DNA of 63,858 nt, filler included, from Pelomyxa schiedti (taxonomy: Eukaryota; Protista; Evosea): the NCBI GenBank assembly GCA_020536535.1. It is 3 parts of 3 records of this genome, joined end to end, with 100 filler letters (N's around TTAATTAATTAA, not from the genome) between each part and the next. Parts side by side here need not be neighbours in the genome. Positions count along the whole stretch, not along the records: positions 1 to 31,489 come from JAHLWZ010000344.1; 2 more parts are not named here. One strand, given 5' to 3'. The first letter of the stretch is position 1; every line of letters begins with the position of its first letter. The notes under the pieces were generated by a model. The model was given only the letters and a program-made list of their open reading frames with translations, ran no database searches and had not been told where the DNA came from. Positions 1 through 31,533 of this stretch are shown here, one piece after another. The position numbers were made by a program, and so were the translations under genes.

Positions 1-1361
1 TTTCAAGCGGTTGCGAGGACGCAACGAGCTAAGCCGGAGGGAGATTGTGAAGAGGTTTTAGCAGAAGGCTGTTGACTCATAATTCCGTACCACCAAGGAT
101 ACAGCCTAAACCCACCACAACTTTAATGAAGAATAACCGAGCCTAATAAAAAGAGAAAACAACAACACCAACCTACATAAGTTGTTTGGCGCAGCCATAA
201 AGGCCGCCAACGTTAATTGTCGGCACAGCTCTGGAACAAAAAATAGGAGTTGGGTTCTGCAGAGAAAAAAAAAAAGGTGCCATCAGGCCCCAACTTTTCC
301 CAAGGGAACCAGATCCATTGACTAAGGCCCATTTCAGAGCCGGAGTGTAAATTGGCGGTTGGGGTAGTTTAAGTATGACACCGAATGTTGATGGCAAAAG
401 CAAAACTTTTGACCCTAATTTTTGCCCGGTTATCGGTATTGTGGGACGACCTTTTGGTGGTTTCGATTTAGAGGGTCTCTACCAGTATCACAATGAAGAG
501 AATGGTAATCACAAAGAAAAGAAAAGGTCCCCAGGCCATTGCACATCTCTGCCAACTGTACAGAACAGGTTAGAATTCATGTTTTGGGAGGGCAGGTATC
601 TGAATACCTTACAAATTTTGAGTGCCATGCAAGGTACCATACAAGTGACACTGGGCCCCAGTTGGAGCGGCCCTCGAATTGTATCAGGTTAAGGGCCCGG
701 GATACGTGGTGATGGCAATTATTGCTGTGGTAGTACGATGAGAGAGGCTTGTGAATAGACGGGAGGAGCACACGTGATAAGGTTATGCTGCAGTGAAGGG
801 GAAAATGAGTATTCCTAACCAATTGGGTGTGCACTTACCATGGTATGCGAGTATTCTTCAGAAGCCGTGACTATAGCATTGTCCCAGGTCGCGACAGGGT
901 CCGAAAGATGTCCCAATGGGTAGATACAATTTATATTTGACACGGCATATCTTTGGAAGTATGTTAAACCAGGAGCGAAAGTAAAGGAAAACTTCTACTT
1001 CAGTACGGGGCCAAATCCAGTTCTCGTGTGGCTCCTCTAAAACAATAGTTAATTTACTTTTAACTTTGGCTAATAGGGAGAAAAGTGTATTTTTTGAGCA
1101 ATCACGTTAATATAAAGACCCAGAAAGTCGTTTATTTCCCCAGCAGAAGTCACAATGCCAGTGTGCCCAATAAATGGAATCAACCACCTTCCATTACATT
1201 ACATTTAAAACTTACCTCCCGCACTCGAGGATTTTTTTTAAAAAAAAAAAGCCCAAATTACGTTAAACAAGGAATTGAAGACCAGACAATGCAAAGTGGT
1301 AGTGGTCTCTTTTGGGATCAACTTCTCTCTCATCACCCATTTGTACAAAAATTTCTTATTT

Positions 1362-1450
1362 GGCTGAATAAAAAAAATACCAGACCGCCGATCCTGAGCG
1401 ATGATAACGAAAAGGACAGCGTTCCGGTCCGTTGATTATTTTATTCAGCC
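1362..1450. mobile_element. 89-bp MITE, copy 1 of the GGCTGAATAAAA-TIR family
   Basis: Perfect 12-bp TIR GGCTGAATAAAA...TTTTATTCAGCC. Flanked by ATTT at 1358-1361 and 1451-1454 (4-bp TSD). Its reverse complement matches 42727-42815 with about 5 mismatches. Confidence 0.9.
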
Positions 1451-1513
1451 ATTTGTTGTGTTGGCATTTTGTTTTTGATCAGTTACGGTAATTGTTTTGG
1501 TGGAAGAGGCTTT

Positions 1514-22480: not shown

Positions 22481-23229
22481 ATGAGTGCAAAAGGAGGGCG
22501 AGGTGGTGGCGAGTCGGGCGGTGGACCGAGGAGAAAGAAGAAGATCAACTCACACAAGGGAGCGTCGAGGACGTATATCGACGAGGAACCAACGGAGCCC
22601 GTAGAGGCAGAGGAGGAAAAGAGCAGCAGCTCATCGTCCGAAGACACTAGTGACGATGAGGACATGGTATGTTTGCTTTCTAAAACCGTACTCATTATTG
22701 GATGATGTGGGGTTCACTTTATCACTCCAACGCCCAAGTAGTATTATAAATACTCTCGATTGTTTACTCTATCTTCTTTCTTGTTTGCAATCTTTCGAAG
22801 GGGTCGTCTTTTGCCTAAACTTTTATTTCTCCCCTTGTGGTGTTCTGCTTTTTTTACCAAAAGCATCACAAACCAAAAGGACCCCAAATAGAGACCTTCA
22901 ACCCAAATAGAAGCAGGCCCATGGAAGCACCAGCCGATACTACCACAGTGAACCTCAATAGAAAAGAAAGGTTTCTTTAGTAACTGCAGTTTTTTCCCAC
23001 CATAATGCTAACCACCTCCAAAAGAGAAGCTCTTGAGGCCCAGAGAACCCGTGAGGCTTACCTGCGAATGACTGCTGAAGGCAAAACGGAGCAGGCTCGT
23101 CGTGACCTGGAGCGCCTTGAGCAAGTCCGCAGGGAGAGACAGGAGGCTGCAAGGAGAAGGGAACAGGAACTGGCTGAAAAAGCCGCCACGAAGCCCGGCA
23201 CAAAACCCAAACCCTCTGGTCGCTCCTAG
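22481..23229 (+). CDS. PDAP1: 28-kDa heat- and acid-stable phosphoprotein (PP28 family)
   Basis: Basic N-terminus, acidic Ser tract, and REALEAQRTREAYLRMTAEGKTEQARRDLERLEQVRRERQEAARRRE matching the PP28 core GKTEQAxxDLxRL. Confidence 0.85.
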
Positions 23230-23317
23230 GAGGCTAGTTGAGTGAATACATTCCCTTTCACGACAAAACCCACGCACACCCCCAACCAGTCAAATTCATC
23301 CACTCCAAAAACCACTT

Positions 23318-23519
23318 GGGTAAATAAAAAAAACACCAGACCATCGCGTTTCTAAAGTTTAGGTTTTGTTGCTAATCACAACAGATTCGATTAGATCAGT
23401 GCACATCGAATTCAAAGAATAAGAGGTGATCGAATCGATTACGGACGTAACAGCCACAACAGCGCGGACATGGAACGTTTTCACACACAAGTGAAGGAGT
23501 GTCTTGCACAAAACATCAA
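23318..23519 (+). mobile_element. End of a longer member of the GGCTGAATAAAA-TIR family, truncated by a gap
   Basis: Begins GGGTAAATAAAAAAAACACCAGACCA (compare GGCCGAATAAAAAAAACACCAGACCA, the reverse complement of the copy 2 end) right after ACTT (23314-23317). The duplicated flank at 23620-23813 shows the uninterrupted site ACTT|GTTG. Confidence 0.75.
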
Positions 23520-23813
23520 NNNNNNNNNNNNNNNNNNNNNNNNNNNNNNNNNNNNNNNNNNNNNNNNNNNNNNNNNNNNNNNNNNNNNNNNNNNNNNNNN
23601 NNNNNNNNNNNNNNNNNNNCAGGGAGAGACAGGAGGCTGCAAGGAGAAGGGAACAGGAACTGGCTGAAAAAGCCGCCACGAAGCCCGGCACAAAACCCAA
23701 ACCCTCTGGTCGCTCCTAGGAGGCTAGTTGAGTGAATACCTTCCCTTTCACAACAAAACCCACGCACACCCCCAACCAGTCAAATTCATCCACTCCAAAA
23801 ACCACTTGTTGAT

Positions 23814-26800
23814 TCAAAAGAAGAAATCTGATTCTATTTGTGGATACGCTTTCCCCCTCGTTCTGCTTCTGTTCGTCTTTGGTGGTGGCATCAACAGTGA
23901 TGAAGAAGTCGAGGCCGGCACCCCAGAAGGTGACATCACAACACACGCGGGAAGCCTGGCCGCCTGCTGTAGTTGCTGCGGGACAGTTGTTGTTGTAGTG
24001 GCCGCCGGAGAGAATGGTGTTGGGGATGGGGCCCTCTGTAGTGTGTTGTTATTGCCGGTGCTGGCGTTGGAAGTTGTAGAGCTGAAGGAGAACAGGTGAG
24101 GCTGCGGTGTTGCCACTTGCTGTTGGGTTGTTGTTGGCGATGGTGAGAATGGCGGCTGCTGTTGTTGTGGAGTGAGTGCATTAGCGGAACTCCCGTTGTT
24201 GNNNNNNNNNNNNNNNNNNNNNNNNNNNNNNNNNNNNNNNNNNNNNNNNNNNNNNNNNNNNNNNNNNNNNNNNNNNNNNNNNNNNNNNNNNNNNNNNNNN
24301 NGCTGAAGGAGAACAGGTGAGGCTGCGGTGTTGCCACTTGCTGTTGGGTTGTTGTTGGCGATGGTGAGAATGGCGGCTGCTGTTGTTGTGGAGTGAGTGC
24401 ATTAGCGGAACTCCCGTTGTTGCTGCTGCTGCCGCCGTTGCCGTTGTTGTGGTTGTTGTTGTTTGGCGCGGAGGCGGGACTGCCAGAGGGGGGGAAGGCC
24501 CACTGGGCATCGTCAAAGAGCGGGGGAGTGGGCGTGGGTGTGGGCGTGTGCGAGGGCGAGGGGGACGTCGAGGGGGGGCTGGCGGGCGTCGGGGTGATGA
24601 CCGCGGTGGACGCGGCTGTGAAGGCGCCGCCGCCGCCGGATCCGCCCTGCATGGACGTGGTGAACGTGAGGGACGGGGCGCTGGTGACCGGGACCGAGAG
24701 CAGGTCCACCAGGAGGTGCTGGCTGCTGCGGCTCTTTGTTATCGCCGTGGGCATCGACGCCAGGCGGGTCATTGTGATGGTCGGCGGCGACGGCGCCCGC
24801 TGCTGCCTCGGCGGCGTCGTCGCGGTCATGAACGCCGCGCTTGGAGGGGGAGATTCCTTGGAGGGAGTGCTGAGTGAGCCCTATTTTTTTTTTTTTTTTT
24901 TTTTTGTTTTGAATTGTATTGTGTTGTGTTGTTTTTGTTTGCTTGGTTAGAAGGTATCTCCCGTTACGTTTTGGGGTTCGGAGGTAGAAGAAGGCATACG
25001 GATGACATTGAGGACTTCTTCTCCAGGGCGGACCTTCGGTTGGAGGAGATGAATTGCTCGAACATTTGAGATGCACAAAATGCTTGGAGGAACTAGTTTG
25101 GGAGTTTGTAGTGAGTAGAGGGAATGAAAACCCACAGGGGTTTTGTAGGTACCGGTCTTAGAATTGGGTCACGGGAATGTAAGAAGTTGTTCAAATCGAA
25201 TGTCTGTGCATTGCGTGTTTCAGTAGGGGCTGTAACAAACTTGTGATAGTCTCCAAGCACTTTTCTGAAAAACGACCTGAATGCAGCACTAATTGCTTGG
25301 CTTTTACATGTTCCTTTATGTTGTTGTTATCGTTTGGGTTTTCATGTGAAAGAGCATACCGTTACTAGCATCAAAGAAAGTGCGCTGTAATTCTTCAATA
25401 TTCTCCCGTGGAAGAAGTCCCTGGTCACTTAATTGAACATGCGAAACTTCACCAGAGTCAGTATCAACAACAACTGTCTGTTAAGGTGAATCACCTTCAT
25501 TTACAGAGATAGATAAGTACCTCATTTAGTGCTCGACTGTGGCTTGGCTTAATGTGACCATGCAAAAAGCCCATAAGGAATGGAAGAGGGGCCTGGAATG
25601 TTTTGGGTATTACACAACTGGATGCATTGTACTTACGTCAAGATACTCCAGAAGCTTGTATGGAACAACCTGGAGCACAATGTTATTTTGAGATTGGTAA
25701 TAGACAAAGCATACCGGAATGAATATATGTTGCCATTTGAATGGATACAGAGCTGATGCTGCAGCATGAATGCAATGTGATAATCTATAGAAAATGAACT
25801 AGGGTGCATCTGGGGGAAGGTATAACCTCTCCAGATCAGACCCAAGAAAAGCAACACGACGTTCCATTAGAAGAGCAGAGAATAGTAGAGTAGTGCGCTT
25901 TGGCCCAAGCGTTTTCACTAGTAGAAAAAAGTTCTAGTACCGATACTAACCATGGGATAGGAAACGGGAAAACTACAACAAAGCAAAGCACATGCGCACA
26001 GAACCACTGGAAACACAAATATTTAGAGGAGATATAGACCTCTCCAAGAGTGTTATCATCATCAGGCCTGAAAAAGACATGGTACGTTGCCAAAGCACCA
26101 CAAGGAGGCAGATTTATAGTCATACTTCCTCCGGGATTTGGAAGAGGATGCTCTAGGACAGAACTAGCCAACAAAATAACCGAGTCCCACGATTGTAGGT
26201 AACGCTGCTCTGAGTGTATAAGGAGTTCTCTAAAAAGATCAAACCAGGGGCTGCAGTTCAAGTTATCCAAGGGGGGAAACAAAATTTAGACCCACAAAAG
26301 TGATATGTAGCATAGGCAGACAGGACAGTCACTATTAGGAATATAGAATCTTCTAACAAATCCATAGTGCCTCTGACCCGTGTCATCTGTAAGCATGATA
26401 GTATAGAATCTAGATTTCTTTGGGTTCTCATCCTCCTCACTTTTTCAAAAAGTAAGTTCACCACTAATATTAAAAAAAAAAAAAAAGAGAAAGTAGAAAC
26501 AATAGAAAAGAAAAGAAAAGAAAAGAAAAGAAAAGAAAAGAAAAGAAAAGAAAAGAAAAGAAAAGAAAAGAAAACTACCAAAACGGAAACGAAATGAAAT
26601 AAATATCAACCTCCAAGTCTGAGGGGCACTGGTCGTCAAGTGCACGCCATCACACAACAGATCCACGTCAGGGAAGCAGAAAATAGACACACTCCTAGGG
26701 GGCTCCAGTACCTCCTCAGGGGGGAAGCACCTCCTCACGACCGCGTCCTGCTGCTGTGGCGGCTGTTGTTGTGGTGGTAGTGGCTGTTGCTGAGGTTGCG

Positions 26801-30300: not shown

Positions 30301-31338
30301 ATTTTGCCAAAACCTCCAGCATTTTGGGAGTGAATTGCGGAGGTTGAGACACATTCTGAGCAAAAATTATTGCTCTACAAACAGTATCGTAAGTGGAAGG
30401 CAACAAGAAAAGGTATACAGATTTTCAGCTGTCATTTTGTTTACATCAGCATGTCGAGAGATAACAAATAGAAGAGAAACCAGGTATACAAACATCTCCA
30501 AGTTAGTTGGTGGTAACGCATTTACAACATTTAACAAGTGTTCTTTTTCTGGAGAAGTGTGAGCATTTGTCTCCCAAGTTAATTAATCACTCATACCAAC
30601 AGAAGAAATATTCACAATCTGCTCACAGATATTGAATGGAAGAATGGGCTCGGACATTTCCCGTATATAGTATTTAAGTAAGGCCGCGAGTTCATGTGGG
30701 TTGATTGTATCCAAAGGAGGAGCAGTCCCTGAAATTTATCCTTAGTACTGCTCTTTCACAGTTATAAAGCTTGATGTGTTTGTTACCAACCAGCATCTAT
30801 GGAAACCTTCAAGACCTTTGTCTCCCCAGGTGATACACTCAGTCTAAATATTCCCTCCTTCCAAGGACCTGAGTGTTTTTTTTTTTGCTTCCCATTGAAT
30901 AAAAACATACATAGTAACCCCCCCTTCGCCAAAAAACACTGATCTTTTCTTTTCTGGTTCATTGTAAACCTTTCCGGCTCCTTTTTTCTTCAAAAAAGGT
31001 GCTCAGTGAGCCAGCGACCTATCCCGATGGCCTTTTTCTCGTGGCTGCGGCGTTGGTGTGTACTCCTTGTGCTAGTTTGTATGGTATTACCATAGGGGCC
31101 ACACACTCACACATTACTACCACCACCACCGCCACCACAACAGCGGGACAGCAGACGCGAGGTCGTACCACGACGGGGCGGCGGCGTACTCTGGGCCGCC
31201 GGGGTCGTCGATGATGGGGGCGCACGTGGCGCCGACGCCGGCACCGACGGGCGAGGCGCTCGGGGCGACCTTGCCCAAGCTGAGGAGGGTGGCTGAGGCT
31301 CTGCTGGTGGGCGGGGGTACGATTCCCTCCCAGCTCAT
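27368..31338 (-). CDS. RhoGAP domain fused to Jouberin/AHI1-like C2 + WD40 protein
   Basis: RhoGAP motifs EGIFRLSV, HELAALLKYYIREMSEPILP and NKMTAENLAIIFAQN. AHI1-like C2 VSILVHKTSPL..VQVHLFD..WEEEIIF..LLFEVL..IAWA. WD40 FSRNGHYIAIVC..YPIALY, GHSQIINDLQWSSDDKHILSSSVDNSVK, WSPDCRYIASGAEDG. The first exon is approximate. Confidence 0.8.
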
Positions 31339-31533
31339 CCAGTTTTACCTTTTTCCTCTTTTTTTCCTTTTTCTGTTTCTTTTTGGGTTGTGGGTTTTGG
31401 AGGGACCTTTGTCTCCCCAGGTGATACACTCAGTCTAAATATTCCCTCCTTCCAAGGACCTGAGTGTTTTTTTTTTTGCTTCCCATTGANNNNNNNNNNN
31501 NNNNNNNNNNNNNNNNNNNNNNNNNNNNNNNNN

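Follow-up and report, generated by a model that had tools for sequence, protein, structure and literature searches.

An abundant 89-bp inverted-repeat element of Pelomyxa schiedti, most likely moved by the Sola2-like transposase of longer relatives

Sola elements, as Bao, Jurka and Kapitonov set out the superfamily in 2009, are said to use a DDD transposase, to produce 4-bp target-site duplications and to be patchily distributed among protists and animals. Nothing in the family described below contradicts membership in the superfamily so defined, with its placement in a subgroup being provisional. Sola is without a Pfam model (PMC5751038). The closest described systems are the Sola2 families of two dictyostelids, DFa-1/2/3 of Dictyostelium fasciculatum and PPa-1/4/5 of Polysphondylium pallidum (Bao and Jurka, 2013; PMC3627910), which have terminal inverted repeats (TIRs) of 12–22 bp and 4-bp duplications reading AWWT, ATAT, AAAT and ATTT. 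The transposase of Sola2_DFa-2 has been printed, with a TD.C..C motif followed by LMDFKENIALGMGPEEL, FWSDGAKHF and QYHGKSDVDRHF (PMC3627910 supplement), as have the catalytic cores of Sola1-1_AP, Sola2-1_HM and Sola3-1_HM (PMC3985635 supplement). Duplications of the AWWT or AWDT type have been called a hallmark of Sola1 (PMC3845634), and Sola1 MITEs (Sola1_NA) have been described from insects that include Bombyx mori and Rhodnius prolixus (PMC3845634).

The genome of the anaerobic amoeba P. schiedti was reported as 52.4 Mb in 5337 scaffolds; it was obtained from seven cells picked by micromanipulation, by way of amplified single-cell DNA, and the paper nowhere uses the words transposon, repeat or MITE (PMC8887013). 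From a stretch of 63,858 nucleotides of this genome, joined from three parts and including filler (hereafter the window), we analyzed the first part (positions 1–31,489, contig C344) and searched the full assembly (52,367,397 bases, 5337 contigs) for relatives of an element that it contains. The reading that we favor, with a probability of roughly three in four, is that this element is a non-autonomous cut-and-paste MITE moved in trans, most likely by the Sola2-like DDD transposase of longer elements.

An initial annotation of the window had described an 89-bp element with TIRs and ATTT flanks, as well as a related end at position 23318. We examined these two copies in the window and found both to be present as described (Table 1). 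The 89-bp element starts with GGCTGAATAAAA and ends with the reverse complement of that sequence. Its inverted arms are perfect over 12 bp and pair at 22 of 25 positions overall, as judged by a repeat search and by direct reading, and the interior between the two 25-bp repeats measures 39 bp. The element is non-coding, being too short for an ORF, and its left and right ends can be distinguished by their subterminal bases, which gives it an orientation. The amoebozoan host, the short TIRs (12–22 bp in the dictyostelids) and the AT-rich 4-bp AWWT duplications are all points of likeness to dictyostelid Sola2. The dictyostelid elements differ in that they measure 10–15 kb, carry Fanzor1 and have low copy numbers, whereas the abundant Pelomyxa form is the 89-bp MITE. 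The insect Sola1 MITEs are similarly non-autonomous, have TIRs starting with GG, make AWWT/AWDT duplications and likewise number tens to hundreds of copies, but they are 190–710 bp long and have other termini (PMC3845634).

Table 1. Positions of the element, its long relative and their flanks in the window
Feature	Position	Strand	Remarks
89-bp MITE	1362..1450	+	one of three identical genome copies (C344, C1881, C2700)
Target-site duplication, left copy (ATTT)	1358..1361	.	identical tetramer at 1451-1454
Target-site duplication, right copy (ATTT)	1451..1454	.	joint skipping 93 bases, 5 bases ambiguous
Left terminal inverted repeat	1362..1386	+	inverted-repeat search, hairpin fold, direct reading
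Right terminal inverted repeat	1426..1450	-	inverted-repeat search, sequence reading
ACTT target directly before long element	23314..23317	.	22/22 distinct left flanks from the extracted loci are ANNT
Long element, left 202 bp, starts GGGTAAATAAAA	23318..23519	+	cut off by 100-N assembly gap
Second copy (99%) of flank 23130-23318, the empty site	23620..23808	+	runs through ACTT (23804-23807) into unique sequence

Folded as single-stranded DNA, the MITE forms a single extended hairpin (-15.5 kcal/mol; z = -4.2), as would be expected of short elements with inverted ends in general. This hairpin, along with the occurrence of pieces of MITE copies in RNA contigs, could also be taken as the signature of a dispersed small structured RNA gene, such as a hairpin, snoRNA-like or miRNA-like precursor, a competing case that the initial annotation had itself raised. 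We consider it very improbable. The fold amounts to no more than the terminal inverted repeat itself, every copy is bracketed by a 4-bp duplication of its own, an apparent empty allele is seen (see below), and the RNA contigs touching the MITE continue into flanking sequence from elsewhere in the genome, as copies embedded in transcripts would. A search of Rfam likewise returned no hit at the gathering score across the whole piece and none at E ≤ 1 around the element. Internal CTGA and GATGATA motifs led us to consider a C/D-box snoRNA separately, and this candidate was rejected because the boxes are in the wrong order and position and the Rfam search was negative.

We characterized the target site by extracting 20 bases from each side of 32 distinct full-length MITE copies. 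A perfect 4-bp duplication flanked 23 of the 32 copies, and at least three of four bases agreed in 31, while pairing each flank with a shuffled partner gave a mean of 3.2 perfect matches and a maximum of 9 (1000 shuffles). No 5-bp flank repeat was found (0/32 copies). The duplicated tetramers were ATTT, AACT, AAAT, ACAT, AATT, AGTT, ATCT, ATAT, ACTT, AGAT and ATGT, with one AACC. Position -4 of the target was A in 30/32 copies and position -1 was T in 31/32, the two middle positions were W in 50 of 64 instances (54% in the flank background), and the bases immediately outside were frequently C at -5 (15/32 copies) and G at +5 (20/32 copies). On the basis of these counts, the preferred target is a palindrome-like C-AWWT-G with a loose middle (ANNT). 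The 4-bp duplication proposed in the initial annotation was thus upheld, but its AHTT consensus, drawn from four sites only, proved too narrow and gives way to ANNT. This is a looser target than the strict AWWT of the dictyostelid elements, as illustrated by ACTT, AGTT, ATGT and the single AACC. Because nearly all targets run from A to T, a 2-bp duplication with the T and A belonging to the element would look alike; the copy with AACC on both sides argues against this possibility. Using the longest stop-free frame at reconstructed empty sites, a crude measure, we found no significant avoidance of coding sequence (median 111 codons, compared with 125 at random; p = 0.17).

Duplications of 4 bp are also made by piggyBac, Kolobok and Ginger elements, and piggyBac and Kolobok MITEs are similar to ours in their short TIRs as well. 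These two superfamilies insert at TTAA, however, and none of the 32 duplications was TTAA, which excludes both. Moreover, neither the ORF pieces linked to the MITE (see below) nor their relatives gave a piggyBac, THAP/P-like or rve integrase match in Pfam, and this absence of the transposase domains counts against all three. We therefore attach very little weight to an origin of the MITE from piggyBac, Kolobok or Ginger.

Searching the assembly with the 89-mer recovered at least 45 full-length copies at 94–100% identity, a lower bound, since scoring covered 40 of the 379 candidates from the first look. With one mismatch allowed, a 20-base left-end word matched the genome 261 times, compared with 0 times for the reversed control, which goes far past what chance would give and is in keeping with the high copy number claimed in the initial annotation. 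Copies exactly 89 bp long with both 12-bp termini perfect were found at about 50 loci. Among 31 copies of exactly this length, mean pairwise identity was 96.2% and mean distance to the consensus was 2.6%, and a handful of diagnostic positions divided the copies into subfamilies. In contigs from the source sample, depth summed across the MITE exceeded that across its flanks by three orders of magnitude, a ratio that is not a copy number; the assembly probably under-counts the copies. The left 30 bases of the MITE had no match in the JGI metagenomes that we scanned. Certain copies lie head to tail or nested, 4–12 bases apart, at the loci L020 (contig C838, 1408-1589), L013, L019 and L029, and on C838 the second copy apparently targeted the duplication of the first.

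We next considered whether the family has moved recently. The copy in the window is identical to copies on two other contigs, and the flanks of the three differ. Comparing the contigs of four public runs from the same study with positions 900–1900 of the window, we identified one contig from a run not recorded as RNA (X2) that joins 1357 to 1451, thereby skipping 93 bases that correspond to the MITE and one ATTT. The joint contains 5 ambiguous bases and its shorter side is 30 bases long, while further X2 contigs cover the filled junctions of the same copy. The empty-site joint was not seen in another of the runs (X1), and the one X2 contig is its sole source. We regard it as good but not conclusive evidence that some of the cells or nuclei sampled carry an empty allele. 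With three identical copies at different loci and a contig without the 93 bp, the MITE is recently mobile, as the initial annotation had proposed.

The assembly derives from amplified single cells (PMC8887013), and many ends of the long element described below lie at contig ends, so chimeric junctions or adaptor-like sequence arising when the genomes of the seven picked cells were amplified or assembled might be suspected as the source of the repeat. We give this next to no credence. The MITE forms subfamilies with diagnostic substitutions, it is present in both DNA and RNA libraries, and its target duplications show a sequence preference, whereas artefacts make no duplications at all.

The MITE at 1362-1450 lies within a gap of ~340 bp that is free of RNA contigs and separates two transcribed minus-strand segments, a setting indicated by introns with CT..AC ends on both sides (950-999 and 1036-1106; 1551-1626 and 1696-1804). 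Each of its repeats contains an AATAAA hexamer, on the plus strand at 1367-1372 in the left repeat and on the minus strand at 1445-1440 in the right repeat. An RNA contig from run X4, which stems from another locus and was placed on 1358-1388, passes from its own flank through the first 31 MITE bases and then into GG followed by at least 23 A. The GG and A run is not in the element and resembles a poly(A) tail ~16 nt past the AATAAA. MITE copies may supply polyadenylation sites in this manner. It is conceivable, if doubtful, that in this compact genome the MITE is a portable, orientation-independent polyadenylation/termination module that host genes have repeatedly adopted, in a family still transposing among Pelomyxa nuclei and cells.

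The related end at 23318 belongs to a longer element. It has 23 of 25 terminal bases in common with the left end of the MITE, is preceded by ACTT and is divergent further in. Around the 100-N gap at 23520-23619, a 189-bp flank is present twice (99% identical), once filled and once empty. The simplest reading is a polymorphic insertion whose two alleles, occupied and empty, were placed one after the other during scaffolding, and the true locus at 23130-23808 is probably shorter than drawn. Genome-wide we found 26 exact left ends of the long element, most of them no more than a few hundred bases from where a contig stops, as a young multi-kilobase repeat would produce in a short-read assembly. 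The MITE and its long relative interrupt the assembly in many places where contigs end, and apparently caused at least one scaffold artefact, namely the duplicated flank around the gap.

The flanks of the long element indicate that it has the same target as the MITE, since 22/22 distinct left flanks from the extracted loci read ANNT; C was found at -5 in 15/22. Together, the 32 MITE copies and 22 long-element ends provide a sample of 54 insertion flanks for Sola target choice (C-ANNT-G). We also looked for the right end of the long element with patterns built from the right end of the MITE and from the long terminal bases, which yielded 6 loose matches only, and no right-type terminus was found outside MITEs in the extracted loci. 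The length of the long form is apparently a few kb.

The initial annotation had proposed a search for long elements with the same TIRs. The longer elements found here share the left terminus and the target with the MITE and hold the remnants of a degenerate transposase. The copy on contig C231 has an intact terminus and is 99% identical to the copy on C871 over about 600 bases. Copies on C871, C500, C1850 and C950 extend further inward, with C871 reaching the catalytic region. The long-element copies that we read are 76–93% identical and older, with frameshifts or internal deletions, and no intact transposase gene was seen among them, all being frameshifted or truncated. In order, the open pieces are IITMDFKEK, LFTDKGPHF and HGKSEVDGHFG. 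A 141-aa catalytic piece matches 18 places in the genome, where no open frame exceeds 316 aa (C1876). About 2.6 kb past the end of the family match in the rearranged copy on C231, a separate open frame of 1420 aa (locus L051, 1539-5801, plus strand) carries lysophospholipase (PLA2_B) and NACHT domains.

An exhaustive profile-free search with the 141-aa piece returned 152 proteins at E ≤ 0.001. Five of these are close and presumably from Pelomyxa, and the others are 26–48% identical and up to 840 aa long. KAH3722821.1, a hypothetical protein of P. schiedti, is from the same transposase family, and certain predicted proteins of this species are transposase fragments. The close relative P0003 (398 aa) has an N-terminal LDPRYK, typical of hAT transposases, ahead of its Sola2-like blocks, and is probably a gene model in which the remnants of two nested transposons have been joined. 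An alignment of 30 relatives revealed an invariant D and K in the first block, a D in the second, and HGK, D and F in the third, with a TD.C..C motif upstream of the catalytic blocks. The triad, spaced D(82-86)D(41)D, is invariant in the 30 relatives.

Pfam searches with the ORF pieces and relatives gave no family at E ≤ 0.01, and DUF7869 was weakly matched by 10 of the 30 relatives (best E = 3.4e-5). Feature-based neighbors in the ESM Atlas likewise carry DUF7869. Comparing the family profile with solved structures gave no match. Named relatives were also sought with a profile word search, which yielded 35 proteins: those with names were hypothetical proteins of fungi, dictyostelids were absent from the 35, and no formal link to the published Sola2 proteins emerged.

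Our placement of the family comes from comparing motifs by eye with sequences printed in the supplements of published papers. Dictyostelid Sola2 transposases have in common with the Pelomyxa protein the upstream TD.C..C and the blocks MDFKEN, W.D...HF and YHGKS.VD.HF, and in Sola2_DFa-2 the blocks follow in the same order and spacing. The Sola2-1_HM core also has DF.EN (DFxEN), HD and NFF..HG blocks in common with the Pelomyxa family, whereas the Sola1 core (FDLEKV, YSDNCGGQN, ERGHTQS) and the Sola3 core are visibly further away. As judged from these motifs, the MITE most likely belongs to the Sola superfamily and is Sola2-like. The initial annotation had suggested a family that was Sola1-like or new; by this placement the superfamily is not new, and the resemblance is to dictyostelid Sola2 rather than to Sola1.

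At the level of the family, the Pelomyxa terminus GGCTGAATAAA is different from the dictyostelid termini, which read GAGCATTTATT or GGAATATTTATT. Under the Repbase rule, a member of a known family has termini alignable to it at positions 1–11 with at most one mismatch (PMC4455052), and by this measure GGCTGAATAAA does not align with the published 5' ends of the DFa and PPa families. Because of this difference in termini, we treat the Pelomyxa MITE as a separate family. It appears to be a new family of a known kind, the family itself being undescribed. It would count as a first mobile element documented in P. schiedti, at 89 bp it is among the smallest MITEs, and the proposed placement would extend Sola2-like elements from dictyostelids to Archamoebae. 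Beyond these points, it is an ordinary transposon finding.

A different Sola-type element, whether Sola1-like or of another DUF7869 family, might instead mobilize the MITE, in which case the terminus shared with the long element would reflect ancestry or end capture. AWWT duplications are also a Sola1 hallmark (PMC3845634), every readable transposase copy in the linked long element is broken, and eleven DUF7869 loci occur apart from the C500/C871/C1876 family, ten of them above the Pfam cut-off. We nonetheless think this unlikely, because the long element has 23/25 terminal bases in common with the MITE and inserts at the same C-ANNT type of target, with ANNT in 22/22 flanks. This second group of DUF7869-type (Sola-like) coding remnants, which might be the true partner of the MITE, was seen on C1345, C1712, C1901, C1158, C83, C806, C912 and C1367, with open frames of up to 305 aa.

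In the mechanism that we propose, the transposase would come from the longer elements with the near-identical 25-bp left terminus, as a Sola2-like DDD enzyme of the Sola superfamily. Supplied in trans, it would bind the inverted repeats of the MITE and excise the element. At an A-N-N-T target, with a preference for C-AWWT-G, it would cut the two strands 4 bp apart and insert the element there, and repair of the offset ends would generate the 4-bp duplication. The long-element transposase presumably moves the MITE, and an intact copy of it presumably still exists.

Other repeats were noted in the window. At 2079-2421, two 70-nt arms that are 86% complementary lie 203 nt apart and contain tandem units of ~16 nt (AAACTTTCGTTGCC-like); they may represent a repeat of the foldback type or some other small element. 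An exact direct repeat of 121 nt occurs at 24081-24201 and 24302-24422 (221 apart), and another of 86 nt at 30813-30898 and 31404-31489 (591 apart), the second copy of which reaches the contig end. These two may be local duplications or assembly redundancy.
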